Below, piece by piece: positions 7,848-45,600 of a stretch of DNA of 64,000 nt. Positions within the stretch are counted from its first letter, which is position 1. Each line of letters opens with the position of its first letter. A program made the translations under genes and the position numbers. The notes under the pieces are model-generated. The model did no database searches, was not told the DNA's origin, and saw only the letters and a program-made list of their open reading frames with translations. This stretch comes from Laetmonice hystrix (taxonomy: Eukaryota). The stretch is from contig OZ249446.1 in assembly GCA_965235115.1 (NCBI GenBank), positions 15,810,001 through 15,874,000 of the forward strand, written 5' to 3'.

Positions 7848-8864
7848 TCAGGTGTTTCGACTGTTTGGCTGCGGAGAGTGCCTTGAACTCGACCCGTCCG
7901 AGTCGTAACCCTTGGACGTTCTGACCCAGAACGTCTCCTTGCTGCCGTCCAGTTTACTCCCTACAAGTGACACTTTCTCCGGGTCCTCGCCTCCAACCAC
8001 GGCCGCCATGAACCCGATATAGGTGATAGCCAAACGTAGGGTTTCGATCCGAGATAGTCTCTTTTCGTAGGCAAAGGTCGGAACTTTGTTACGCAGATCA
8101 TCAAATGCTTCGTTCAGGTTGAACATGCGGCGTCGCTCGCGGACGTTGGCGGCCCTGCGCTGGGCGACCGTCGCAACCCGGCGACGTTTGGGTTTCCCGA
8201 CGTGGCCAAAGGTAAGGTCCCTCTGTCGGAGGATCATGGCACGGTGGTCGTCAACAGTGGTCGGGCTGTCCACCAGATCAAAGCCTTGGTAGGTGTCCAC
8301 TTGGTAGAGCTGGCCACTGGGTTGGGAGTGAGGGTAGGTGATGTAGCCGGTGTATTGGGTGTAGGAGTGATGCTGTGGGGTCAGATACTGCGGCTGTGGC
8401 GGCTGTGGTGGCTGCCCCGGCGGCCAGGGTGACAGAGGCCGCCCGGGGTGTGTAGGATGATCGACCGTGTCTGTAGCCGACCGTGGTTCCCGGACGTAGT
8501 AGCAGTAATCGCCGCCGACCGGACCATCAAGGGAACCGCCCGATCCACTTTCTCCACGGCCGCCGTCAGTCAGGGTCATATCGTGGGGAGGGACGGTCAT
8601 CGTGAGGTCCCCCCGGCGGGCACAGCTGCCACCCTCGGCCGGTAAGGACGCGTAACCACCCCCGCGGTAACTCCAACACGACGGACGCTGAGCGCAGTCG
8701 TACCCCACCCTCTCCCGCCGGGCACAGTCCGTCCTTAGCCCCGCCGCTACTCCCAGGTTGTCAGGACTTGTGAACGGGGGAACACCAGGCCTCACGGCCC
8801 CCGCCTGGAACTTTGCAGAAACAGCAGTCGCCTTCCTACATGAACCCCGGAGATTGGAGTTCAT
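7848..8864 (-). CDS. FERD3L: Fer3/Nato3-type bHLH transcription factor, copy 1 (closest to canonical FERD3L); single exon, up to 338 aa
   Basis: [63 protein letters not shown] matches the Fer3/NATO3 signature ([27 protein letters not shown]) rather than PTF1A or Fer2 (SKVDTL/SKIDTL). The start is uncertain; an internal Met near 8600 is possible. Confidence 0.93.
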
Positions 8865-10522
8865 GCTTGACTAAAAATCCAAGTTGTTCACTGCTTAACT
8901 CAAGTCGACAGGGACTCCTTAAAATGCCCACAGAACACTGGTCACCAAAGCTGGAGAACGGCTGCCACGACTGGCCACCAGGAAAACGTTTCACGGCTCG
9001 GTGCTGGATTCGGCAATCCAAGTCCGAGTTGCTGTCAGAACACCAAGTATCAATCATGGCTTGAATAAATATCAGACGATACTGGACTTGTTTTAATGAT
9101 CCTCCCATACCTTGCCGCGCCCCCGTTACTGAATCCAATATTGTAGGCGTGCTTCAGTGACTGGGGTAGTACGGGACTTGTAATATCCAGGCCGTCCACA
9201 CCACACGTGCTGCCTTATGCCACATTTACCCCGATTATAATATCAATAAGCGGCACTTAATTTGGCCCTGATGTGTTATAGTTCCACAAATCCTTTCTTC
9301 CTGCCTGATTTCAATAAACAATGTTCACTTTTTCCCGTTAACACCGGCCGTTGAAGATCAAGGATCATTATCTGGCCTCTGTCTGCCGTCGTGATCTATC
9401 AATATCTTACAGTAATTAGAACGCCATCTCACTGACGGCTCGGCAATCATTCATCGCGACAAATTACACATTAAATCGGCAAAGTTTTAAAGTCTGTGTC
9501 TTTCACGCAGACACCGCAGAATATAAGCCTGGAGCAGTTGATGCCTCCTATCACTTCATAATGATATTATACATATTGTGTGCCTTGTATACTGCATGGT
9601 ATAATGTTCGCGTTTTTTAAAAGAAAGTATTTTGAAATTCACAGTATACAAACTGAGCGTTTCCCTTGGAACACGGAATCAGAGGGACAGGAGGACCACG
9701 GCAAGACGCCGACCACATCCTGGTTCCTAAATCGTCAACTGCCAGGCTATAATCTGTAGGCCGATATCTTAGCGTTCTGACCATGAACCATACACCATCG
9801 ATTACCAGATCATAAAGACACCATGAACTGATCCAAGTCACGTGACTAACATACAGAAACAGGCTCACCGCAATCCTGCCTCAATAAGACGGAAAGTTTA
9901 CTTTTGTTGTGACGAGTTGACGTCTAGGTACATGAAGACGACAATAATTATAAAATTGATGTGTTTTCTGGGAGGCAGGATTAGAAACGACACTATTATA
10001 TATGTAAATAATGAAATTATTATAAATTTCATTATAACATCATTTAGAGTACGGGCCTTCGTACTTGTGAAATGCTTAACGTATTCATAAAGCTGGATGA
10101 TATCGTTTATATGCTTGATTTCGGCTGGTGTGTACTTTTGGTCACTTTAATTGCCTCCCTAACTGAGCTTTGGTGAGCTTGTCGTCCGCCGGCATACGAC
10201 AACACGTGTCTGTTATTGCTGCACGTGCAGTACGCGTGTGGGACCTGTTAGGTGGAGTGCCGTGTCGTATAGTGTCAGTCAGAAATGGTCGTGTGGTTTG
10301 GTCGTACACGTTTTACAGGCCCGGGTTGAGGGCGGACCGTACCACAGCCTCGGTCGACCGTTTACTGGGAAGTCGACGGAGTTTCTATAGACACACGTGT
10401 GCTAGAATTACAATGGAAACGGAACCGCAGGTTGGCGGGTGTGGCCGCTGAGGCACTGTCACCAGCTGCGTGTGTTTCAAATGGGTCCATTTTTATATAA
10501 ATGAGGTAAATTCTTAATCATG

Positions 10523-10716
10523 TTAAGCTGCGTGTCCACCGGATGCGGACACGGTTACGGATACGGATTTTTAAAAACACATTACAAATATAGGGACTAT
10601 GTCAGATCGGTCGCCGTGTCCGGACCCGCACGAGTGAACACAGTCCCTATATTTGTAATGTGTTTTTAAAAATTCGTATCCGTATCCGCATCCGGACCTG
10701 TGGACACGCAGCTTAA
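10523..10716. mobile_element. MITE with ~80 bp terminal inverted repeats
   Basis: ttaagctgcgtgtccac...gtggacacgcagcttaa. The arms also pair over cggatgcgga and tttttaaaaacacattacaaatatagggact. TTAA lies at both ends (TTAA or TA target site); superfamily uncertain. Confidence 0.85.
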
Positions 10717-10926
10717 CACCATATACTGATCATATCTCATGCTTCCCACATTTTGTGCACAACAGCGAAGAAATACATATTGGCCTACTTTTAAATAAAA
10801 TTATTTAAAGTGTAGATTTTAATTAATTAAAGCGTAGATTTAATTCATAATCACACCAGGCGTGATTGAAGACACTATAAGACATGCAAGAAAAGTGATG
10901 AGGCTTTTGTCTCTTGAACAATCTGA

Positions 10927-11708
10927 GCAAGACTGGCACCCAGTAACAGTTCTGCAAGACCTGACACCCAGCAACTGCAAGACTTGGTACCCAGCAACCG
11001 CAAGACCTGACACCCAGCAACTGCAATACCTGGCACCCAGCAACTGCAAACCTTGGCACCCAGCAACTGCACGACCCGGCATCCAGCAACTGCAAGACCT
11101 GACACCCAGCAACTGCAAAACCTGGCATCCAGCAACTGCAAGACCTGGCACCCAGCAACTGCAAACCTTGGCACCCAGCAACTGCAAGACCTGACACCCA
11201 GCAACTGCAAGACCTGGGATCCAGCAACTGCAAGACCTGGCACCCAGCAACTGCAAGACCTGGGATCCAGCAACTGCAAACCTTGGCACCCAGCAACTGC
11301 AAGACCTGGGATCCAGCAACTGCAAGACCTGGTACCCAGCAACTGCAAGACCTGGCACCCAGCAACTGCAAGACCTGGCACCCAGCAACTGCAAGACCTG
11401 GCATCCAGCAACTGCAAGACCTGGCACCCAGCAACTGCAAGACCTGGCACCCAGCAACTGCAAGACCTGACACCCAGCAACTGCAAGACCTGGCACCCAG
11501 CAACTGCAAGACCTGGCATCCAGCAAGTGCAAGACCTGGCACCCAGCAACTGCAAGACCTGGCACCCAGCAGCTGCAAGACCTGGCACCCAGCAACTGCA
11601 AGACCTGGCATCCAGCAACTGCAAGACCTGGCACCCAGCAACTGCAAGACCTGGCACCCAGCAACTGCAAGACCTGGCACCCAGCAACTGCAAGACCAGG
11701 GATCCAGT
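10927..11708. repeat. 23-bp minisatellite (GACCTGGCACCCAGCAACTGCAA), ~33 copies
   Basis: Read directly. It accounts for the six overlapping repetitive ORFs at 10823-11844. Confidence 0.95.
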
Positions 11709-14700
11709 AATTATGAACTTATTCAGAGATGACCAGCTGTGCCTTAAGTCGAGGACACCAAAAGGGACCAGTATCTTAAGCAATAAAAGCCAAACAGGCC
11801 AATTATTTACTAATATTGAATTTTATGTAAGTAATAAATTATAATGATGAACTTTTCAATGTTATAACGATGTGATTCAGCCCTATAGACTAAACTAATG
11901 CAAAAGATACTGAACGGAACGCCATAAAAATGAAGAAAACACATATCCTACAAAGAATATAAGCAAGGGATACCTAGAGAATGGCAGACCGTGACTAGCC
12001 TCAAGTACGTCTGGCTAGACATTTGGGCTCTTACAGTGAAAACCGATTTGTTCAAATGGAGGGTCCACTCTCCACATAATAGAAATGGCATTCAGCATTT
12101 CCTAAAATCCTTACCCGCCTACCCCTTATTTTAATATCGCTTGCTAAGCCTTGCTGGGCCTTCAATTATAACACATGGATAAACGTGTGTATGGCATAAG
12201 TATAGCTCTACATTACATGCATAAGGATATAGCCATGTTTACAAGGTGGCTATCATTGTTTCTATTGATGTTTAGATCTGAGAGATCTGGCATAATAAAA
12301 AGGTGCTGATCACATAGGCCAATCGGCCGGGGTGTTCAGCCAGCACCAAGAAGGAATGTCCTGTAATTACCTCCGAGATTTCCCCCACAATCTCGCACGG
12401 TTGCCGTGTTATGACGGGATCCCTCGGGAACCAATTAAAACCAATGTCTGTTCCTACAAAGGCCTTAAGGTTCCGCGCCGCAAAGTGGTTTTCGCAGCCA
12501 CCTGGGGCGGCGGCCCCTTCATCTATTATGGTCCTCAAGTGTTACTTGTCGAGTTGCTCCTTTGTCGCTCGAGTGCCAAGGACAATACAGCGTGACAAAC
12601 AGATTTGTTGTTGGCCATTTGTGGCGTAGGGTTTGAACTCTGCGGTAAAGGAGTATTTTGCCTGCTTCATTTCGGCACAGCTAAAGAGAACTTTCCGGGG
12701 TTCAGATTTGTGTAAAGCAAGATCAGAAAGAAATGAGCATAGTTCATGGTTATCCCCAAATAACGTGCGACATTGAGGAAAGAGGAGTCAAAAGTTTATA
12801 ACGTACGTAGATTCATTCCTTAAAGGAAAGGTAAGGCACGATAACGTGCGGGACGTATTGAAAAATACTTAACCCTCTTATATGACAATAATCATCAGAT
12901 CTTATACCTTAAATTAGGAATATATATAATCGTTTTCCTTTGACTAATGACCAAAGACGATCAGCTTTGGAAAACATCCTGCATGCTTCGCAACAAATTA
13001 TACCTAAAACCAAGTAGGTATTCTATAGTTAATGCTGATTTTAGAATTTTTTTGCAGGTCTACATGTGCATGTTATTCTAATATAATACCAACTTTGTCT
13101 CTCTAAACTCAAGGATGTATAAAGAAGTTAGTGCGCCAAGCCTACAGGATATTAGATATCGATCGGCATAATCCCACTGGAGTCTCTTCCGTGTAACGTA
13201 GACTGTCGTATAGTTTTAAATAACTCTGTTCATCTACGTAATGCAGCTGCCAATGTATCATCTATATAAATACCATATTATAATTCCAAGCGTTTTTAGT
13301 ATCTTTTGCCTGTTGTTCTCTTTATAGCGTTTTGACTAGGGACAGTGTGTATAGAGTCTTGCGTGCCGCTTCCAATTAACATTATACGTACATTGTTTTG
13401 GAACAGGACGTGTATTTCAATCATGTCATAAGGGGGACAAGAAATCAAAGGAATGACAATTTTTATGAAAACTGACGCCATTGCCATGCATCATTGCTTT
13501 TCACCATGCAAAAAGGATAGACACGGAAGCCTGGGGTCGCATCCAGGGCAGAATTGTACGCGTTCAATATCTTTTGTTTTCATTTTGTTCAATTGGACAT
13601 TATGTAATGTAGAATGCGCCCGCATTTAGGAATGCTAGGACCTGCGGCAAGATGAACACGACAACAGGCCGTCGGCCTTCTCAGTATCGACATGGCGTGT
13701 CGCAATGATGAGGACTGCATGGGTGGGACTGGGTGGGACTGGGTGAGACTGGGTGGAGGTGCAGTCTTTCAGACGACCTACTACAACCTCTGTCTGACTT
13801 TGGTATAGATCAACATCATTGTAATACGTGTAAGACCGTTTCAAAGTGATGCAACAATATACAAAATACATAAAACACGCATCAACTATCGTATTCATTA
13901 CTGAACATGACATTATTAACAACGGAAACATCATCAGATATCACAATAGCATCATTATTATCTGTAAATAAAATAGGGAGGACCGTAACTGGGGCATCCA
14001 GCCGGTAACAATGTCCAATGCATCAAATTGTCAAAATATTGCCAACAAATACTACAATTTGTAATGACAACATTATTGTTCGCTTGATAATTTTACTCAG
14101 TGGCATTGTGTGTCGATATTGTTAAAAGAAGCATATGTTTTGTTATGTTTATGGTTTGGCGTATTATTTCGTCGAGTTATGACGAATAGAGTCATGATGA
14201 CACAACCTTGTCGTAAACAAAGTAAATGTGCTATAAAGATAACTCATCATCGCGACATACAATGTAGCATTGACCCCTCAACATGCTTTATATCACCCAG
14301 AAAAGACAGCTGACCAACAAAGCAGAACTTAAACAGCTTTTGATGTGCAGCATCCAAAAATGGGGACAAACGAACACGTGGCCACAAAAACGGTTATGCA
14401 ACACTAATTTTGAAAGCATGTAGTGCGAACTATAAACATGTTCCATCGCCTAGCTACAGCCGCCATAACCAACATCAAAGGCATGTCTAGACTCTAAGGA
14501 TTTATGGGAACGTGTAACTCACACCAACTTTTTGTACATTTGCCACAATTTCATAGTAAACGCGCATCAAAAAGCCGCAATTCGCCATTTTTCTCTACCA
14601 GCAGGATTTTCCAGCAGAAGCCGCTTCGAGGCTAGCCACGTGTCGGCTGCGACATTGATAATGAGGCTGAATGGTTGAGGCAGACGACATCAAGCCACAT

Positions 14701-16035
14701 TTTGCCGTAACAAAGCCAGTATTCAGCCAGGCGGAAACAGGCGGCTGCCGCGAGGGGGCGTGACGGCACAAGGCATGGTATATGGCGACCCGTGACGCCT
14801 GGAAGGCGGTGCTCTGCCTAATTTTGCTGGGCCTCAATACCTCACTGGGAGAGGTAGAATGTCGTGAAACTAAACAAGCTCACGACCCATGCGATCAATG
14901 GCGCCCCCTGTGTCGATAATAAGCAGTTGAGCACGAAGCCTAATGACACCCTGGTAACACATTGCCGTCACTACGATCAGATACTAAGCTCTTAATGAAG
15001 CTTCAGAATGAGTAAGCTGTAGACCCAATGGACTTGTGAACAGCTCAAAGATGCTTGACGCACCAAAACGGGATGCTTTTCAACCCAGGACTCAGGTTTG
15101 GGGGGGGGGGGCATTTTGATACATCTTTGTTGGGATGACGACCCCCCCCCCCCCCCCCACCATATGATTTTAAAGCTGTGGGTCCTTCGTTCAACCCGTT
15201 GCAGATATTTGGGGCCTCGTACAATTTACATGAGACTTTGGTCTTTAGAAAATATTCTTGATCGTTTGAGTCGGGAACCGTAAATCGTCGGGTTCCCAAG
15301 CAAAATATATCTTATATAACTGTGCCATATATTTCAGACGCCCTAGACCTTCAATATTTGTTAAAAGGCGCACAAATGAACTGCCATCCAGCCAAACTAT
15401 TAATTATTTATTTTATTTATTTGTTTCTTAATTTTGTCAAATACTAACAACGAATAGTCAATGCTACATAAAAGAAGAGTCAAGATTGACCCGAGGGTCG
15501 ATTAATGTACCTTATACAATAACACCGACGAACTCCAAAATGATATTTCAATTAACCCAATTTTAATTTCCTTTTTCTAATAGAAATTGAAACTCTAGTC
15601 AGAAAATCCCCACGCAAGTCGCGCGTCGTTTAAACCCTTATCCATTAGATATAAAATATTGGTTGCCGTTTTACGCATTGTTGTGACAGCAAGGGCCCAT
15701 TCAGTTCGACAATACCACTTTGTTGCCCTATTTTATACGTTCAATGGTTCCCGTTATCGGTCAGATTTTTATCTTCATCAAGTGCAGGTGAACGTTCTGC
15801 CAAACGCTGGCGTCACGCAAACAGGGGTTCGCCCAACCCGAAACTCGATACTTTCAATATGTATCAATGGGCGGTGGTATTCGATTGGCTCTAATCGTTT
15901 GATTCGGTTTGCCACGCCTTCCCAAGCCTGCCCCTGTGACGTGTAGGCCTATATATGGCAGGGAGGACACGTGTGTGTTCAAGGGAGCGTGAAATGCGCG
16001 TGCGTCCCATTGCTATGGGTGCTTACCTGTCTGGT

Positions 16036-16041
16036 TATAAA
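16036..16041 (+). promoter_or_regulatory. Candidate TATA box of Fer3-like copy 2
   Basis: TATAAA(G) ~330 bp upstream of the ATG at 16368, amid E-boxes (CACGTG, CATATG, CAGCTG). Confidence 0.45.
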
Positions 16042-16367
16042 GAGAAGTGACTTGAAGGTGGCCCTCATATGTTACCGTGGTCCCATCAAAGTTACATCAC
16101 GGGAAAACGCTGGAAACGTATACGGATAGTGACACGGTGACCAGCTGTTGTAGGGAAAACGCTTCACTTTCGCTGTATTGCCTCACAGTGTATATGTGAC
16201 ATTGCCAACGATGCTGCAGTTCAACAAGCAGTAGGACTGGGGACATCTTCTACCATCATCTGACATTTACCAACAACAAGTTGTCATTCCAAAGGTGATC
16301 TGGAGATTACGAACACATAGAGGTCGTCTGACGTCGCGACGACAATCACAAGACCTGCAGCTCCAAA

Positions 16368-17246
16368 ATGTTCTGTGACTATTCCACAGCCTCGGACACA
16401 TACCCACAAGACCATTCTGTCTATGAACAAGGATTCTACCACAACGGCAACAGCAGCATTAGCCAAGGTAATGACAATTCTCATTGCGTTCAATACTCGC
16501 CATCATACAGTGACAATTCCACAGGACAATTCTCAGACGGGTCCTCATGTCAAGGACAGTCAGTGATGGATATTTTCGACTACGATCCGTCACATGCCTA
16601 TGCCAAGCGCCTTCGGGAGTACTTCGATGACGCGCCCTGCTCACCAGGCCTGCGCTCCGAAGATTCTTGCTCTCCTGTGTCCTACACGGGGGGTTGGGTA
16701 GGGGGTAGAAAACCGGACCTTGAAGAAGGACCCTCCATGCCCACTTCATTCCCACCTGCGCTGCGTTCGTACGCTTCTCAACCTGAGGCATACTCTTACA
16801 ACTCCCACCCAGCCACTGACCGCCTCGCACCTGCTGCTCCGGCCGGCTGCCAACTGGACACCTTCACACAGATGACATTATCAAATGCTTTCTCTTCTTA
16901 CCCGCATCCATACAACGTTACACCACAAACGGCACTTCACAACTCCAATGGTAAACCGAAACGGAAACGAATTATCAACAAGGAACAGCGCAAGGCGGCC
17001 AACGTGCGAGAAAGGCATCGAATGACCAGCCTCAACAACGCCTTCGATGGGCTCCGCAAACGCGTTCCAACCTTCTCCTACGAAAAGAAGTTGTCGAGGA
17101 TTGAAACCCTCAAACTCGCCATTACCTACATTCACTTCATGACAGACGTGCTGAAGGGGGAAGATGGGTTCTCCTCTGATAACAGTGACTTTGATAAGAG
17201 TTCTCAAATCGCAAGGACTGCTGTATCCGATGGTAAAATATTATAA
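16368..17246 (+). CDS. Fer3-like bHLH transcription factor, copy 2; single exon, 292 aa
   Basis: [67 protein letters not shown], preceded by a Ser/Tyr/Pro-rich N-terminus. Confidence 0.92.
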
Positions 17247-17647
17247 ACATACACTCTCAAACGTACAGACTGTTTCATCATATCACAATCAACTCATCTA
17301 CATTTCTCTCAGTTATAAAATGTGTTATCAGAAATATAACGGTGGTACTGCATGAGAGTATACACATTTATATATAGTGTACATATATTTATAGGTCTAT
17401 ACCTCCTTTACAAGGCATTATAAAGTTGTGTATCAAGTCTACAGGAATACAATATTTATATTCCCTTTGACTATATTGATACATTTTCACAGAGACAATA
17501 CCTCATTTGAGGATGAGAACTCGCACATCAGTGTTGTGAGTGAACAATTTTGTTATATATGTTATTAACATTTGTATCTTTTTGCTGGCATGATTAACTG
17601 CATAGTCAGCTATCTTGATGATGATTAAAGTTGTAATGGTGAAAGCC

Positions 17648-17801
17648 ATATCATTATTTGATACCTTTTCATTGTTGTATTCTACCATATTCCGAAGCAA
17701 GTATATCAAAAGATAGATACGTAGCAATATCATTATTTGATAACTTTTCAAGTTTGTATTCTACAATATTCCGAAGGAAATATCAAAAGATAGATAAGTA
17801 G
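17648..17801. repeat. Imperfect tandem duplication of ~78 bp
   Basis: atatcattatttgata...aaagatagata.gtag occurs twice in succession. Confidence 0.8.
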
Positions 17802-18605
17802 ATCTAGCCATCTCCTGTATACCAGTAAGTAGTTACTTATATCTCTACATCCACCCAGACGGATACACATACATAAACATCCCGGCTTGCTCACCACATA
17901 TACATTATGACAGACTTGGCGGCAGAAATAATGATTAACAATATTATTACATAATGCACAGTCATGCATATCTACATGTCAGGACATAGGCAGGCACACA
18001 TGAATACACAAACATAGTAACATTATTGTCAGACTATATAGTGAAAACAAAACAAAGTATTCTCTTTCCCATACGCTCCTTCTCAAACAGATACTCAGTC
18101 AGCATGCACAGAACATACGCATGCAGACGATAAAGTCGTCGTGTTAGATTGAGGGCATAGAGAACCTAAATCAAAGCTCAGTATTATACATGCACGCAAT
18201 GCTGTGTTGTTTTCTGTATGAGGGGTTCATTGTGACATTAATGAACAAATGGAAGCAGTACGACCGCAGATACAACCATCCACCCACAACGGAAATAATT
18301 AGATAATGACATGTTGAACGTATGGGTTTGTAGCAGGTACCTGCAACGGGTCATTTTGAGGGACATGTACATCAGAGTATTGACACGATAACGGATTGTT
18401 TTTATTTTAACAGGAGGTCCGACCGACCTAGGGTCACATGTCAGCCGCAAGACTTTTCAACCGCGCGTAATTGGGGTTCAAGAAAAAAAAGGCAGTTGGC
18501 TATCTTCTATTGTAAAGCTTTATAGTATTAATTGAATCGGTAGGCTATGTGGGCAAGCGTAAGAGAAGACACGCAAAGGACTAATACAGCGCAAATGGCA
18601 TGCAG

Positions 18606-18629
18606 CTCTCTCTCTCTCTCTCTCTCTCT
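18606..18629. repeat. (CT)12 microsatellite
   Basis: Read directly. Confidence 0.95.
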
Positions 18630-21556
18630 AAAATATAGGCTTTGGCATACTCTTCAAAGGTTAGATTATAGGCCTACCGCATGTACTTTTTAAAATCGTG
18701 TATTTTGTTTGGTATATACATCTGAAACTGCTCTAGAAAATCCCCTTTCCTTGAATTCTGTTTAGCCACCACCGCATTGGAACATTCCGTGGACAAGATA
18801 ACGCACTCACACAGACATGCGCTATAAGAGCACCCGCCACCTCCCCCCATGTGTGACTGTCACGGTTCGTTGACCCTGAAACCCCTCAGAGTTGTTGTCA
18901 GCCCTGGGCTATAATTTGTGGATTTATCCTTCACTTCTTGTCGCTTCATTTAACGTGTTAACCTCAAATGCACGCGTACTAAACTCCCGGAGCATTTATT
19001 TTCCCGGCGTAAATTAAAACTTATTGTGCAACCCTCGTGCAATCTAAAAGTCAAATTTTCCAGAAGACAGGCAGGTTTTTCTATTATTCCGATCTTCATA
19101 TTGACAGCAGGTGCAGGCCACATTGATCCATTTCTTTGTTACATACAGGATAACCGGCAGTGGGGAAAAATTGGCGCATAATTTAGTGTGTCGTTAAACA
19201 CAATATTAGGGGAAACTCTGAGTGGTTCGCCCTTAGTGACTCCGCAGGGTGAGTAATTTCTCATGTCACTCAGTATATAATTAATTACTGGCTAATTTCT
19301 GGAAAATCTCAGGTCCATTCATCTGGCTAGATATTATAAGAGATAATGTCGTGAAGTTAACTAGTGACAGGGTGCATGGAGTTTCAAGAGTTATGCGGAC
19401 AGGAATAGATCGATGAACTAGGCAGACAAGAATCGTATCCATCCGAACCACTGTACACCATAGTCACAATGGTTACGCTTTATTTGAACTTTTTATTTGA
19501 TATTTGATATATTGTTGACGATCAAGTGAGATAATCTATGACTGTGATATAGATGCAACATGTCGACTTCATTGAGATATATACTACCGAACATGCAGGT
19601 ATATTGCCTGTATACAAGTATATGGTGCATTTCATAGTTATGCATACAAAACATTATAAATATATCCACGCACACAATACATAAAGTGTATTTTATATCA
19701 AAACACTATTTGATAATATTTGGGGCCAATGTAAAACGTATTATTGAAAATTATTTTAAGTTCCACATTAAGGGCACAATATATTTACGGTACTAACCCC
19801 CATTCCATGTCCTATAGGATTTAGATTGAACACTCATTTTCTAAATCATTCATATTTGACAATGGGGATAAGGACTCAAATAAACCACGCATTCGTATTT
19901 AAAGGATATGAATTGTCCCAACGAAACAAAGTTTGAGCTAATTGTATGTACCTGCTTTACTAACAGGCACTGAGCGAACCTACTGTGGGCCCATTGAAAT
20001 GGAGTTTTTATGTGTTTTCATGGTAAAAGAATAGGTAAGTGGTTGGTGAATAGGACAAGATAAAAGAATGAAGCGATTCAACTGGACAACAAGTTGCGTA
20101 CTCAGTGAGCGTTCCGGACTGCAGGTTATACTCACATGACACGCCACCCCTTTCAAACTCAACGCGGCCAATTCAAATTCTTGATCATTTTGGGGAAACA
20201 TAATTATATTTCATTTAAATATTTAAATATATTTAAAGTGGGCCGACTATTTAGTGGTCTGTCCAACACATGAACCAGCGGAACTACGTGTCATTTCAGG
20301 AAGAAGGAGCAGAAGCAGAAGAAGAAAATATTTAAACATTTTTGTGTATTTTTATTGTGTATAGTTGGGCATTAGAGAATACGAAGTATCACCACGCTCT
20401 TTGCTATCACAAAGATGGTTGTTACTGATATGAAGTTATGTGTTGGGATGCATAGACATCATAGCTATCACATTTCATTTTCATATTTTAGGATACATAA
20501 CATAAAAGGGCTACTTAGTCATTGCGTATATAACGCACGGCATAGAACGTTCATTCTATTATACGTGTGGCAAAGAAGGTAAAAACTTAATGTGTGCTAT
20601 ATCCTCCAATAGTATTATATTAGAATTTTAATTTCATCCAAAATAACGATTGTATTCTCTTTTTCTGTATAGACCCAATTAATAATATGAAATAATGCTC
20701 GCATCATTGTAATGCAATTATACGGCCACTAATATACGCTGACAACAGTTACTATTATACGAAGACTGCTTATACTGCACTTAGAAGACTGTCCTTCATA
20801 CGGCATAATACAACCTGCTGCATGCATGAATAAGAACAACTATGGATGCTGAAATAGTGAACGTAACAACAATGGCAGTAATAATGACCAGAAAAATAAG
20901 CATCATTATTCCAAAAATATAGTAACACATTTTTAACGTCTACACAGGGCCTGTTTTATGCATTTTACATGGGACACCACGAGTCTATTGCTACAGAGTC
21001 TGAAGCCAGGAGCAGCTAAGCAGGATTATACAATAACTTGAATTGGTCACTGGCATTGCCAAGTCCATGGACCCGCATCAAAATTAAAATTGACACTTCT
21101 GAATTTTTGAGCGGTTCCCTGACCTCCCCCCCCCCCCGACACGAACGCGCACCATAACAGTTCACTACAATATGAAATCCCCCGAAGCGCTCTTGTTACA
21201 TAATACACTCATGTACTTGTGCGCTGTAATTACACTATTTCACATACATGTATAAAGCAATATGTCACCGACTTTTCCGACACCAAGAAAGTAGGTTGGC
21301 TGAATCATCACTTTGTTAAAATGATAGCATGGCAATAGGCATGGATTTCTAGATCAATGTGTAAGCAAGGCACGTTCCGTTTGCGCTATATACACCAAAA
21401 ATAACTTAATACGTATTTAATGAGATAAATATATCTTTGAATCTTCATCTGAAGTCATTGAAGCGCATCATCAGCTACAATATGTATAGGCAGCTAACAC
21501 CGAAGTTTTATACATCTATGAACTTAAATGGGAAAACACTTACGGGACACTTCATT

Positions 21557-21631
21557 TTACGGTATCACACTGGATAAATATAGTGGAATGTATTCATCTT
21601 ACGGTATATCACACTGGATAAATATAGTGGA
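21557..21631. repeat. ~42 bp tandem duplication downstream of Fer3-like copy 3
   Basis: ttacggtat(at)cacactggataaatatagtgga occurs twice. Confidence 0.8.
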
Positions 21632-21677
21632 GAGTATTGCCACCTAAACATTTATATCATCTTTGATAGCTGTCAGA

Positions 21678-22319
21678 TTATGTTACTTGGGTCGACAGAA
21701 ACTCCGCGTCTCTGTGAGAGTTCTCACTCATTCCCCTCGCCATGCGACCGTTTTTCTTCACTCCGTAACTTGGCAATCGACCTGAGAACAGTTTCACTTC
21801 CTTGGGGTTCGCACCATTAAGAATATCCGTCATAAAAGCTATGTAAATTAAGGCAAGGCGCAGGGTCTCGATTCGGGACAGTTTCTTTTCGTAGGAAAAT
21901 GTCGGAAGGCTATTCCGCAAGAGATCGAAAGATTCGTTCAAGTTGAGCATGCGTCGTCTTTCGCGGACGTTGGCTGCCTTTCGTTGGTCGAAAGATATGA
22001 TTCGTTTACGTTTCGGTGGTTTTCTCTGGGTCTGTCGGAGTTCTGGCCCTGATGTACCGAGTACTCCTCCACTGCCCGTTGCCATGGTGTTCATCGGGTA
22101 TTCGTAATTTTGAGTTACTGCCGAGTTAAACGTCACATTTCCATGGGCCGCGTAGTCTCGGTGAACCCCGTTTTGGGCGGCATCGTGCGAGAATATTGTG
22201 GATGACGTCATACGGTTGTTGTAGTCAGACGTTGCCGTGTTGATGTCCTGGTGTGACGTGTACATTGCTAATGAGTAGGGCGGCGACACGCCTTCTTGTT
22301 TCTCCAAGTAACCAGGCAT
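21678..22319 (-). CDS. Fer3-like bHLH transcription factor, copy 3; single exon, 213 aa
   Basis: [66 protein letters not shown]. Confidence 0.92.
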
Positions 22320-42668: not shown

Positions 42669-45600
42669 TCATGGGATTCACTCAGGTCCATTGACAAAAT
42701 TAAAGGGTTAATATAGCCCTGAATTTTGCTGAAATACCGACACCAGGGCGTAAATCCCCCAGTCTACTCACCAGGATATCATTCAGATCAAAGACAACGT
42801 TGTCACTGACAGAGTTAATATCTGTCTTTAACTTTATGTCCTGAAGAAGATCCCATTATTTGTACGAATATCTTGATCCAAACTGCTTATATTAAAGGCA
42901 TGAGGATGCATCTACATAGGTGCGGAGAAGCCTTTGTCGAAAATAGGTGCCATTGGGCTTATCTCTTAAGCAAAACAGCAGTAATATTGTCAAGATTCCC
43001 AAGAGTTGATAGAGTTCCTTTACGTTTTAGCTCCAATAACCAGTATCTTTTCGAGGTACCTAACGTTGCTTTCGAATCGCATTAAATAGTTCATTTGCCA
43101 TGTCGGTTTCTATTTGTCGACTTCACAGTATTATGTATACAAGTCTGACAAGTAGGAGGAGGTTTTCCCCATCACGCCCACTCAAATCGTAATACTTTAC
43201 ACCCAGAACCCTCAACCACAAGACGACCATGCAGGTTGGCCTGCTGAAACTTACAGCTTTCGAAATAGGAGTCCTATCCAGTTCCAATAGAATGCACACA
43301 TTAGGCAGATCAAACAATCACCAACTTCGTGTGCTACAAACGTAACCTGGTGGTTTTTCTGTGCATTAAAAGTATGCAGTGACCATAAAGATTTACACAG
43401 GTTCTTTGGAGGTCTGACGTTGCAAATCTGTCACGGCAATGCGACCGTCTTTTTTACAATCCTTATAAAGCGGGGTCAGCTTCCCCGAGACTATAGGCCT
43501 ACACCTGTCATCGATTGATGACAAATGAAGAGGTCGCTTTGATAATAAGTGAGAGTTTTCTTACCAGAATGTTACGAGGGAACGATTAGTCTTGAAGGCA
43601 ACCACATGAGAGGACGGCCCTCAGCGTGTCTGTGCCGCCGCCACGTGCATCAACTCGGGTTCCGCTGGAGTGCATGCCATGCAAAAGCCACCTTGTTCGT
43701 CTGCTGCGATCTGACGTCAGGTGGCGAATTGGCTGAAGCGTCGGAGCTGCGCGTAATGTGCTATGTAGCAAAGGTTGCTGAAAAACATGAAGTCGGTGAT
43801 ACGTAAGTAAATAATCCAGGAGGTGAGGGGGAGGGGGATGCTCCCTCGTCGCCATTCGGAGATGAGCATTCAGCCATCTTTAAAAACTTCCCGCGCCTTA
43901 CCGTCGAGGACAAATGCCGAGCGAAAGGTTTCAGTTACGGTTGAGGAGAGAAGGTGTGCTGCAAAAGAAAATAGTTCAGTCGCCCGAATGTGGATATAAG
44001 GAAGAGGCCCAGGAAGATAGGACAGTGGTTATTGCAGAAATAATACTTAGTACATGGGTCATCATTCAGAAAAAAATATTATTCACCACCTGACGTACTT
44101 AACTGGACCTGTATGATGTTAAGTTAAATGACGAATTCCCTCGAGTTGAAATTGTATAGGCCTACCGCATGTTTGAGGGCAGCTTGGTAATGTTCAAATA
44201 TTTCAAAGCGCATAATAGTTCATTCATGTACATGTATAGATGATCGAGTTCACATTCGTGAACAAAAGGGTTATACCAGTTTTTGGAGACTTTGACCTAG
44301 ATTGCAAGGAGTATATAGAATAACTCTCAAATTGGCGAGTCTTCGATTTGAATTCTCAGTTCGCACAACTAGGTCCTATCAATCACGCATATGGGAGATT
44401 TTACAATTAAATCCTAATTATCGATTCGCTCCAGTGTCGAAATGATTGGTTACAGTGTTTGCAGTGAAGTAAATAATTCTTTGTGATGTAACGACATGAC
44501 TAATCAAAGGGTCTATATTCATATTAATAGCATGAAACATGACGTTATACTGGGAATATTCACTAACGGGTCTTGTGGCATACAAGGCCAGCTGCGTGTG
44601 TGCTCTCCACATGTATGGGTGGGCTCGCTTGTCGCAATAGACGTCTGCATGGTTCAGTGACAGTGAAGTACCTCCCAAGTTAAAGTTTATTAGATAAAAA
44701 CAATTCGCTGGTACCATTGAATAGATGGACTGTGTTATGAACAGACGACAGGTCCCCGTGAATCTCCAGTAAAGACTGCCATTCAAATTTTCTACTACAT
44801 GATGATTTAGATTTGGTATGAGTCGCATGACCTGCAACTTTCAAAATACCAGAAGCTGTTATAAGTGTAAGGATGGATGGATGGGCCGATGGAAACAAAG
44901 CTAGATGAGTCGGAAAAGGATGTCGCCAAAAGGTCTCACTGTCTAACGTATATCCCCAAAACAGACAGGTTAAATGTATTGTAAAATTAAATTGATGATT
45001 GTGGACGACATAACATTGACGGACCATGAATTTAAATTTCGATAAACAAGATTGTCACCCTGCAAGGAAATGTAGTCCTGCCTATCTCCACTAAATTATG
45101 TACACAAAATGAATTAATGATGATCTGAAAACACTGTATAATCATTTTGTCTGTGTACATCATCCTTTACATAAACGCATGTGACCTAATTCTCAACATA
45201 CTCTCAATACCTTTGTTAGGCGTTTTTCCTCTCCGTTTTTTGACGGCTGAAGCTTCTTTGAAAAGGAAGAAAAAGGTTTTAACGCCAACGCTACTGTTGA
45301 AATGGGGATATGCCAACAGTTGGATGTTGATTGACACGGAGGCAACATTGAGTGGGTGAGGCGGCCGACCTACCGACAAGATTTTCTGCATACAAATGAT
45401 CAAAAACATGCTGAGAGATGTCATACATATGTCGTTTAATGGATTCACCGCAGAACGACGTTTCGGTTTACATAACCACGTAGGCCTCAATCCCTCGTGA
45501 CCCAAAAAATATATTTCACAGAACGCTTCCCCGGCGAACGCGGCAGTCGACGACTGTTGATACCGCGTCTAAAATGACAACAAGACAAACCAACTTTTGA

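Follow-up and report, generated by a model that had tools for sequence, protein, structure and literature searches.

Three linked single-exon bHLH genes of Laetmonice hystrix as probable old tandem duplicates of the Fer3/Nato3/FERD3L family

The window analysed here (i.e., the whole 64-kb stretch of DNA) carries three intronless bHLH genes, which an initial annotation had attributed to an old, lineage-specific expansion of the Fer3/Nato3 family. The locus raises the question of whether all three genes belong to this family, whether they are old and functional copies, and whether they are held together by shared regulatory DNA.

Gene layout and domain content

The three genes are single-exon open reading frames (ORFs) located within 14.5 kb, i.e., g1 at positions 7848-8864 on the minus strand (338 aa, bHLH domain at residues 235-285), g2 at 16368-17246 on the plus strand (292 aa, residues 207-258) and g3 at 21678-22319 on the minus strand (213 aa, residues 112-163). 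Each ORF contained one Pfam PF00010 (HLH) domain (E = 1.6e-18 and 66.7 bits for g1, E = 2e-17 and 63.1 bits for g2, E = 3.2e-16 and 59.3 bits for g3; curated cut-off of 20.7 bits), spanning profile positions 1 to 51 or 52 (of 53). The three intronless genes of the initial annotation were thus recovered in full, and a six-frame scan of the window, which is free of N, found exactly three bHLH domains. As matches to group-A bHLH domains number about 27 in the whole 627-Mb genome, the occurrence of three inside 14.5 kb is far beyond chance. The single-exon status of the genes is supported by the observation that each ORF, from its first Met, aligns with an orthologue from a related genome.

g1 and g2 are arranged head-to-head and g2 and g3 are convergent (<-g1 g2-> <-g3). 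The region between the start codons of g1 and g2 (8865-16367) is 7503 bp long, in agreement with the approx. 7.5 kb initially reported, and the spacer between the stop codons of g2 and g3 (17247-21677) is 4431 bp long. Inside the g1-g2 intergenic region, a minisatellite of 23 bp × 32.4 copies is located at 10952-11697 (91% matches and a score of 1262, Tandem Repeats Finder); it is responsible for long repetitive spurious ORFs in all frames.

Both motifs pointed out in the initial annotation, i.e., a loop and helix 2 of the form PTF[AS]YEK[RK]LSRIETL and a PKR[KR]R basic lead-in, were found in g1, g2 and g3, with the lead-in reading KPKRRR in g1, KPKRKR in g2 and PPKRKR in g3. All three copies also show the Fer3 states LSRIETL, xLN (in helix 1, as [FLT]xLN) and YIxFM (at the end of helix 2). 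The residues of the basic region R-x-A-A-N-x-R-E-R-x-R have an established role in contacting DNA at the E-box; as judged from the predicted proteins, the DNA-contacting pattern R-x-x-x-N-x-R-E-R-x-R, including the E-box glutamate, is intact in each copy. g2 represents a derived 'FSYEKK / ETLKLA' type without the DPKEVKL-like motif that follows helix 2. The 72-aa bHLH blocks of the three proteins are 65-69% identical to each other. On the other hand, the N-termini, previously described as unalignable by eye, are indeed no more alike than shuffled sequence (local alignment z = -0.96 to +0.76 against 200 shuffles). The N-terminal regions of the three proteins are low in complexity.

Assignment to the Fer3 family

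Over its 58-aa core, g1 shares 88% of residues with Drosophila 'protein Fer3' and 78-81% with vertebrate and amphioxus Fer3/FERD3L, as compared to 59% with the PTF1A-like and Fer2-like genes of its own genome. The corresponding comparisons gave 69-81% (named Fer3/FERD3L) versus 57-60% (own PTF1A-like and Fer2-like genes) for g2, and 67-76% versus 53-57% for g3. In a first phylogeny (tree 1; 66 rows), g1, g2, g3 and two further loci of the genome (L004 and L005) formed a clade with the named Fer3 references, i.e., Xenopus and Misgurnus Fer3, amphioxus FERD3L and Priapulus Fer3-like (support 99/89), while the PTF1A-like, L007 and Fer2-like genes of the same genome fell outside this clade. A search of the ESM Atlas for relatives returned generic HLH clusters only. 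Overall, the assignment of all three predicted proteins to the Fer3/Nato3/FERD3L family, as initially proposed, is supported by tree, identity and signature residues. By this assignment, the paralogues are predicted to be tissue-specific, class II, group A bHLH transcription factors.

The sister families PTF1A/Fer1 and Fer2 provide the closest comparison, as they are also group-A bHLH proteins with a PT(F/L)xYEKRLS loop and are represented by genes on the same chromosome as g1-g3. One possible alternative is that g2 and g3 lie outside Fer3 and fall within, or sister to, one of these families, with the loop motif being convergent. Consistent with this reading, the long PTF1A/Fer2 branch joined inside the Fer3 radiation, with weak support, in a second phylogeny (tree 2; 69 rows), and several relatives carry the automatic NCBI name 'pancreas transcription factor 1 subunit alpha-like'. 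Moreover, an AU test did not reject a clade of g2, g3, their orthologues and PTF1A/Fer2 (delta lnL = 10.7, P = 0.245; 85 columns); this result, which is uninformative at 85 columns, does not contradict the family assignment, and branching within the Fer3 family likewise lacks resolution at 85 alignment columns. Tree 1, however, separates g2 and g3 from PTF1A and Fer2 (99/89). In tree 2, a topology forcing all Fer3-type rows together was 5.4 lnL above the free-search tree, and, in their domains, g2 and g3 reach 67-81% identity to named Fer3/FERD3L but just 53-60% to the PTF1A-like and Fer2-like domains of their own genome, which differ from g1-g3 at every Fer3 signature position (LSK[VI]DTL, SIN and FL/LL instead of LSRIETL, xLN and YIxFM). 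In addition, the Fer2-like gene of this genome has a phase-1 intron in the loop, whereas g1-g3 have none, and distinct PTF1A-like and Fer2-like genes are present elsewhere on the chromosome. We thus consider it highly improbable that g2 and g3 belong outside Fer3.

The Fer3 complement of the genome is larger than the cluster itself. Searches with three different queries all returned the same top five loci, so that the genome has five, not three, Fer3-type genes; all five are located on one chromosome, and the additional two (L004 and L005) form a second tandem pair, with members 5 kb apart, located 770 kb from the cluster. The three-gene expansion that had been proposed is thus real with respect to the linked genes, but does not represent the whole family in this genome.

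Age, constraint and conserved linkage

In the bHLH block, NG86 dS was saturated in most pairs, and omega ranged from 0.10 to 0.14 where it could be computed. Between paralogues, 27-30 of the 47-50 codons encoding identical amino acids differ in DNA. For g2 and its orthologue from sp2, dN/dS in the bHLH block was 0.097 (sp2, like sp3, is a more distant, very divergent genome). By these estimates, the bHLH domain is under purifying selection, with a dN/dS of about 0.1, which answers one of the checks that the initial annotation had called for.

Each copy also has its own orthologue elsewhere. In the nearest relative (ERZ26222911), g1 corresponds to P0114 (47% identity over 100% of the ORF, from MNSN... 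to ...SPQPNSRNT), g2 to P0230 (48% identity over 95% of the ORF, from Met1) and g3 to P0001 (58% identity, from Met1 and near full length). In tree 2, each copy grouped with its own orthologue (support 99/98 for g1, 90/86 for g2 and 100/98 for g3), and a g3-type clade covering four genomes was recovered with support of 96/80. The mollusc paralogues, on the other hand, formed clades of their own without supported pairing to g1, g2 or g3. Given the saturation at synonymous sites and a separate orthologue for every copy in another genome, the duplications are old, in line with the age initially suggested for the expansion.

P0114, P0230 and P0001 share one 322,434-bp contig of the nearest relative, on which the g1 and g2 orthologues are head-to-head and approx. 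6 kb apart. Two further genomes, ERZ25767047 and ERZ26052287, also have convergent g2-like and g3-like genes, separated by 19.7 and 39.6 kb, respectively. The 10 kb of DNA upstream of the g2-like gene contained no gene of the g1 type in one other genome. The proposal that the copies have been held together, for which microsynteny was to be checked, is thus borne out in the nearest relative, where all three orthologues are linked and the head-to-head arrangement of g1 and g2 is kept.

These data also bear on two alternatives to a set of old, functional genes. As all three genes are intronless, and as their N-terminal regions are of low complexity and cannot be aligned between paralogues, at least one copy could be a non-functional relic, i.e., a retrocopy or decaying duplicate with an open frame that persists by chance. 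The three sequencing runs returned for this organism, all from one sample, contain 75-83% of a 6-kb segment that is mostly intergenic and thus represent genomic DNA, none of them being registered as RNA. However, the ORFs are intact and align at 47-58% identity over their whole length, including start and end, with genes of a related genome, and a dN/dS of about 0.1 at saturated dS argues for constraint on the bHLH block. Intronless genes are, moreover, the norm in this family (in Capitella and Ptychodera, too, each copy consists of a single ORF), and conservation of position and orientation is not expected of retrocopies; we consequently give little credence to a relic. The least credible reading is that the three copies go back to a recent tandem triplication specific to this species or to a duplication in the assembly, as, even though clusters of close tandem paralogues are common and tree 2 includes within-species sister paralogues in Capitella and Ptychodera, the paralogues are just 65-69% identical in the bHLH block with no similarity outside it, dS is saturated, the three orthologue pairs already refute it, and all three orthologues are found on a single contig of another genome.

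We conclude that g1, g2 and g3 are, very probably, three functional single-exon Fer3/Nato3/FERD3L paralogues, i.e., old tandem duplicates that have been kept as a micro-syntenic block. As far as coding sequence can tell, they are old, functional duplicates, and g1, which keeps the ancestral sequence, is the conservative, canonical copy, with g2 and g3 being derived. Old tandem duplications would have given rise to a block with the fixed orientations <-g1 g2-> <-g3 as part of a five-member complement. From what is known of class II bHLH proteins, each protein would be expected to dimerise with an E-protein through its HLH domain and to bind E-box DNA through its intact basic region. The three unrelated and fast-evolving N-terminal regions may confer cofactor or regulatory properties specific to each copy, and the copies may be deployed in different cell types.

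Intergenic DNA and relation to known Fer3 genes

One possible explanation for the persistence of linkage would be that the genes depend on shared or interdigitated regulatory DNA. The initial annotation had suggested that the DNA between g1 and g2 could co-regulate both genes; this region (8865-16367) presumably holds both the g1 and the g2 promoter and may be regarded as candidate shared regulatory DNA. When positions 1-26000 of the window were compared by blastn (word size 9) to the sp2, sp3 and Ptychodera loci, no conserved non-coding elements were found, and matches were limited to bHLH-coding segments. The comparison with sp2 and sp3 therefore lends no support to shared regulation, although both genomes are very divergent. 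A more far-reaching interpretation is that the triplet <-g1 g2-> <-g3 represents a deeply conserved regulatory unit, i.e., a small 'Fer3 complex' with a logic comparable to that of the achaete-scute or E(spl) complexes. Shared or interdigitated enhancers would then fix order and orientation across distant spiralian genomes, g1 would keep the ancestral neural role, and g2 and g3 would have taken on roles in lineage-specific cell types, e.g., chaetoblasts. We regard this interpretation as rather unlikely.

Single-copy Fer3 genes, i.e., Fer3/48-related-3 in Drosophila and FERD3L/Nato3/N-twist in vertebrates, share the PKRKR lead-in, the loop and helix 2 with the present genes, and their coding sequence is single-exon, as found here. 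The human FERD3L gene is a single-exon gene adjoining TWIST1. Compared to these single-copy genes, the present genome has five copies, derived residues are found in g2 and g3 (FSYEKK, with RERHRM in g2), and the DPKEVKL-like motif after helix 2 has been lost from g2. The initial statement that Fer3 is a single gene in Drosophila and vertebrates agrees with published counts for human and Drosophila (Table 1, PMC5381572).

Clusters of three to six Ptfa(Fer3) paralogues have, however, been described in molluscs, annelids and a brachiopod (Bao, Xu and Shimeld 2017, Genome Biol Evol, PMC5381572), with three copies in most of five molluscs and two in one, six in Capitella, four in Helobdella and four in Lingula. 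As clustered Fer3 genes are thus known from several phyla, and also occur in hemichordates, the term "lineage-specific" in the initial annotation proved too narrow. These lophotrochozoan clusters resemble the present one (three genes in 14.5 kb plus a pair) in that multiple paralogues are tightly linked, similarity is high in the bHLH domain but not in the remaining, diverged parts of the protein, phylogenetic resolution within the family is poor, and the clusters are read as old. In Capitella, we directly observed two Fer3 genes in head-to-head orientation at a distance of 2.8 kb. Conversely, the present genome differs from the 2017 clusters in that its five copies fall into two sub-clusters separated by 770 kb, and one-to-one orthologues and fixed orientation were traced here across up to four genomes. 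While Fer3 shows tight linkage to NeuroD in Lottia and Capitella (PMC5381572), the NeuroD-like ORF of the present genome (L009; C12:11.59 Mb) shares the chromosome of the cluster but lies 4.2 Mb away from it.

Ptychodera flava (CM083791.1) likewise has intronless tandem Fer3-type genes, with 1 kb between P0024 and P0021; the chromosome carries P0163 as a third gene of this type. Unlike the genes of the present cluster, P0024 and P0021 are on the same strand and are sisters in tree 2 (95/84), which points to an independent duplication or gene conversion, rather than to ancestry shared with the cluster studied here, as the probable origin of that pair.

The 16.8-kb mitochondrial contig of the genome has all genes on one strand, uses TGA for Trp (12 in-frame TGA codons in COX1) and has a trnK with the anticodon UUU. 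Its gene order matches what we take to be the annelid ground pattern. A one-strand rule has been reported for annelid mitochondrial genes (PMC7682095, PMC4505326). The mitochondrial data thus indicate a lophotrochozoan and, most probably, an annelid genome; an ambulacrarian affinity, which matches in Ptychodera and Amphiura had suggested, was discarded after this analysis.

With respect to function, fer3 is expressed in the CNS midline and floor plate in other phyla. In annelids, fer3 expression has been reported in the chaetoblasts of Owenia and Capitella (PMC9050690, PMC13275895), with the paralogue unspecified, and published annelid expression also includes D-quadrant micromeres. As expansion and clustering of Fer3 in spiralians are already published, the present data represent a sound annotation that overturns nothing. 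What is new, and was beyond the resolution of the 2017 survey, is the identification, in several genomes, of one-to-one orthologues and of the fixed order and orientation of individual Fer3 paralogues. The cluster is thus a usable case for the division of roles among copies of a cell-type-specifying bHLH factor that go back to old tandem duplications, and it raises the question of which copy is the fer3 of annelid chaetoblasts.

Three Fer3-type genes and their family assignment

The window carries three intact Fer3-type bHLH genes that are under purifying selection and show conserved linkage. The open reading frames reported in the initial annotation are present with identical boundaries, i.e., g1 (7848-8864, minus strand, 338 aa), g2 (16368-17246, plus strand, 292 aa) and g3 (21678-22319, minus strand, 213 aa); g1 and g2 are head-to-head with 7503 bp between them, and g2 and g3 are convergent with 4431 bp between them. 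Each gene encodes one Pfam HLH domain scoring far over the curated cut-off (E = 1.6e-18, 2e-17 and 3.2e-16 for g1, g2 and g3, respectively), and a six-frame scan of the window, which is without N, found exactly these three bHLH domains. As only ~27 group-A bHLH matches were found in the 627-Mb genome, the grouping of three such genes is not due to chance. The PKR[KR]R lead-in (KPKRRR in g1, KPKRKR in g2, PPKRKR in g3) and the PTF[AS]YEK[RK]LSRIETL loop/helix 2 described previously were found in all three genes. The bHLH blocks (72 residues) show 65-69% identity among the copies; local alignments of the pre-bHLH regions gave z scores of -0.96 to +0.76 (200 shuffles), in agreement with the claim that the N-termini are unalignable between copies. 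Overall, the initial observation was confirmed and its interpretation is supported.

Two other features of the window were observed. The g1-g2 intergenic region contains a 23-bp minisatellite (10952-11697; 32.4 copies, 91% matches) that creates long spurious open reading frames in all six frames. Downstream of g3, the minus strand (25915-61936) has six or more distinct exons encoding VWA domains (Pfam VWA, E = 1e-23 to 7e-39), which represent parts of one or more large multi-VWA genes.

We assessed family membership with two trees and with core identities. In the first tree (IQ-TREE, 66 bHLH domains; support given as ultrafast bootstrap/SH-aLRT), a Fer3 clade (99/89) included g1, g2, g3 and the two further own-genome loci L004 and L005, together with Xenopus and Misgurnus Fer3, amphioxus FERD3L, a Priapulus Fer3-like sequence and all other hits, and left out the own-genome PTF1A-like gene, the divergent PTF1A-family gene L007 and the Fer2-like gene. 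In the second tree (69 rows with named taxa), the long branch of the sister families PTF1A and Fer2 attached within the Fer3 radiation at a weakly supported node; holding all Fer3-type rows together was 5.4 log-likelihood units better than this free-search tree. The alternative that g2, g3 and their orthologues join PTF1A/Fer2 was not rejected by an AU test with little power (delta lnL 10.7, p = 0.245; 85 columns), and the bHLH domain is too short for resolving deep branching. Identity over the 58-residue core is a more direct test than the trees: identities to named Fer3/FERD3L proteins were 78-88% (g1), 69-81% (g2) and 67-76% (g3), and identities to the own PTF1A-like and Fer2-like proteins were 59%, 57-60% and 53-57%, respectively. 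The Fer3 states LSRIETL, xLN and YIxFM are present in g1, g2 and g3; the sister families show LSK[VI]DTL, SIN and FL/LL at those positions. Copies g2 and g3 are thus closer to named Fer3 proteins and do not group with another bHLH family. Within the Fer3 family, g1 is the conservative copy (88% identity to Drosophila Fer3), and g2 and g3 are derived copies.

Age, constraint and conserved linkage

Synonymous sites between the paralogues are saturated (NG86 dS not computable or >1.8), and 27-30 of the 47-50 codons that specify the same amino acid differ in DNA between paralogue pairs, which excludes both recent duplication and recent gene conversion. Where computable, dN/dS was 0.10-0.14. Each copy has a separate full-length orthologue in the nearest relative, ERZ26222911, namely P0114 for g1 (47% identity, 100% coverage), P0230 for g2 (48%, 95%) and P0001 for g3 (58%, 92%); the old duplication proposed previously is upheld by these data. 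As the orthologue alignments begin at Met1 of each window reading frame, and that of g1 reaches its last residues, the single-exon reading frames are real coding sequences and the genes are intronless, as initially proposed. The N-termini are kept between orthologues though unrelated between paralogues. The full-length orthologues and the dN/dS values argue against a pseudogene or retrocopy reading; by sequence criteria, g1, g2 and g3 are functional genes.

The suggestion that the genes have been held together was borne out in related genomes, where both linkage and orientation are conserved. In the nearest relative, the three orthologues are located on one 322,434-bp contig, with the g1 and g2 orthologues head-to-head at about 6 kb; no HLH gene was found within 10 kb of the g3 orthologue, so that the g2-g3 spacer is longer than the 4.4 kb of the window. 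A convergent pair of g2-like and g3-like genes was found in ERZ25767047 (1,251,824-1,252,825, plus strand, and about 1,272,538-1,273,296, minus strand; 19.7 kb apart) and in ERZ26052287 (3334-4179, plus strand, and about 43,747-44,355, minus strand; 39.6 kb apart). The 10-kb region upstream of the g2-like gene in ERZ25767047 contains no g1-like gene, and the ERZ26052287 contig stops 3.3 kb upstream of its g2-like gene. The spacers differ about nine-fold and orientation is constant; conserved non-coding elements were not detected in comparisons with these two genomes. The second tree recovered the orthologue pairs of g1 (99/98) and g2 (90/86) and placed g3 in a four-genome clade (96/80). In ERZ25767047, a DIRS-like retroelement (L030:1668-5892), with RVT_1 and phage-integrase/tyrosine recombinase reading frames, is located 4 kb upstream of the g3-like gene.

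Other bHLH loci and the mitochondrial genome

Own-genome scans with g1, g3 and L005 as queries always placed the same five loci on top, i.e., g1, g2, g3 and two further genes in tandem on one strand, L004 (G000:C12:16586519-16586854, plus strand) and L005 (G000:C12:16591618-16591875, plus strand), 770 kb off on the same chromosome. These intronless Fer3-type open reading frames (213 and 279 aa, respectively) are 5 kb apart. Both show LSRIQTL in place of LSRIETL; L005, on a long branch beside a g2-like protein, has 62% identity to PTF1A/Fer2 versus 62-66% to named Fer3.

Next in rank were L006 (PTF1A-like, IPTLPYEKRLSKVDTL), L007 and the Fer2-like L026. L006 (G000:C12:1050566), whose open frame continues into a repetitive CHRGKVVVN tract, and L007 (G000:C12:974005; loop IPLASGDRKLSKVDTL) are 76 kb apart. 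A phase-1 intron interrupts the bHLH of L026 (G000:C12:24226613-24226723 and about 1.5 kb downstream, minus strand) within the loop (VPTFPY | EKRLSKIDTL), and the Fer3 copies are by contrast intronless; another bHLH gene, L011, is 24 kb from L026. Contig C12 (30,595,731 bp) represents 4.9% of the genome, yet 12 of the 27 group-A bHLH matches are located on it, corresponding to 7 of ~20 independent loci (binomial P ~3e-5): five Fer3 genes, the PTF1A-like gene and L007, NeuroD-like and Twist-like genes, L016, L011 and the Fer2-like gene. This enrichment fits the ancient group-A bHLH linkage proposed by Bao et al. 2017 (PMC5381572).

Contig C35 is the mitochondrial genome (16.8 kb). TGA encodes Trp and trnK has the anticodon UUU, so the code is not that of echinoderms. 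The gene order is cox1-N-cox2-D-(atp8)-Y-cox3-Q-nad6-cob-W-atp6-R-H-nad5-F-E-P-T-nad4L-nad4-C-G-M, followed by rrnS-V-rrnL-L...S-nad1-I-K-nad3-S-nad2, which we take to be the pleistoannelid ground pattern except for the position of trnG. The 13 protein-coding genes and ~21 tRNAs all share one strand; annelid mitochondrial genes are all on one strand (PMC7682095, PMC4505326). The mitochondrial features thus indicate a lophotrochozoan and most probably an annelid. The control region (G000:C35:1-2100) has about four tandem copies of a ~512-bp repeat, with reading-frame strings recurring at 512-bp offsets.

Known Fer3 clusters and proposed function

Human and Drosophila have one Ptfa(Fer3) copy each (Bao, Xu and Shimeld 2017, PMC5381572), consistent with the single-copy state initially cited for Drosophila and vertebrates. 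The same survey reported three copies in most of five molluscs (two in one), six in Capitella teleta and four each in Helobdella and Lingula, with paralogues clustered in molluscs and annelids, a linkage its authors considered primitive, and with diverging embryonic expression among old clustered paralogues (PMC5381572). We directly confirmed two intronless Fer3-type genes in Capitella (head-to-head, 2.8 kb apart), and in Patella, Tegillarca, Saccostrea and Gigantopelta such genes have adjacent locus tags or share scaffolds. Beyond Lophotrochozoa, a single Ptychodera chromosome carries three copies, of which two are separated by 1 kb, and a Saccoglossus scaffold carries two. Clustered Fer3 expansions were thus already known in these animals, and the window provides a further case. 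Mollusc paralogues formed clades of their own in the second tree, and none was paired with g1, g2 or g3 with support. Unlike the published clusters, L. hystrix has five copies in two sub-clusters. The survey also reported linkage of the paralogues with NeuroD in Lottia and Capitella (PMC5381572), but the NeuroD-like reading frame of L. hystrix is 4.2 Mb from the window cluster and not tightly linked.

By analogy with class II bHLH factors, each protein would dimerise with an E-protein through helix-loop-helix contacts and use its basic region to bind E-box DNA; g1, g2 and g3 all have this region intact. The g2 type has lost a DPKEVKL-like motif after helix 2; this loss and the unrelated N-termini suggest, from sequence, that the copies may have different cofactors or activities. 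We hypothesize that g1 and g2 could be co-regulated through their shared 7.5-kb upstream region. In D-quadrant micromeres of the annelids Owenia and Capitella, a fer3 gene functions downstream of ERK1/2 and BMP; at later stages it is a marker of chaetoblasts (PMC9050690, PMC13275895). The increment over published work is modest; what is new is that one-to-one orthologues and the fixed arrangement of a divergent g1-g2 pair followed by a convergent g3 can be traced across several genomes.
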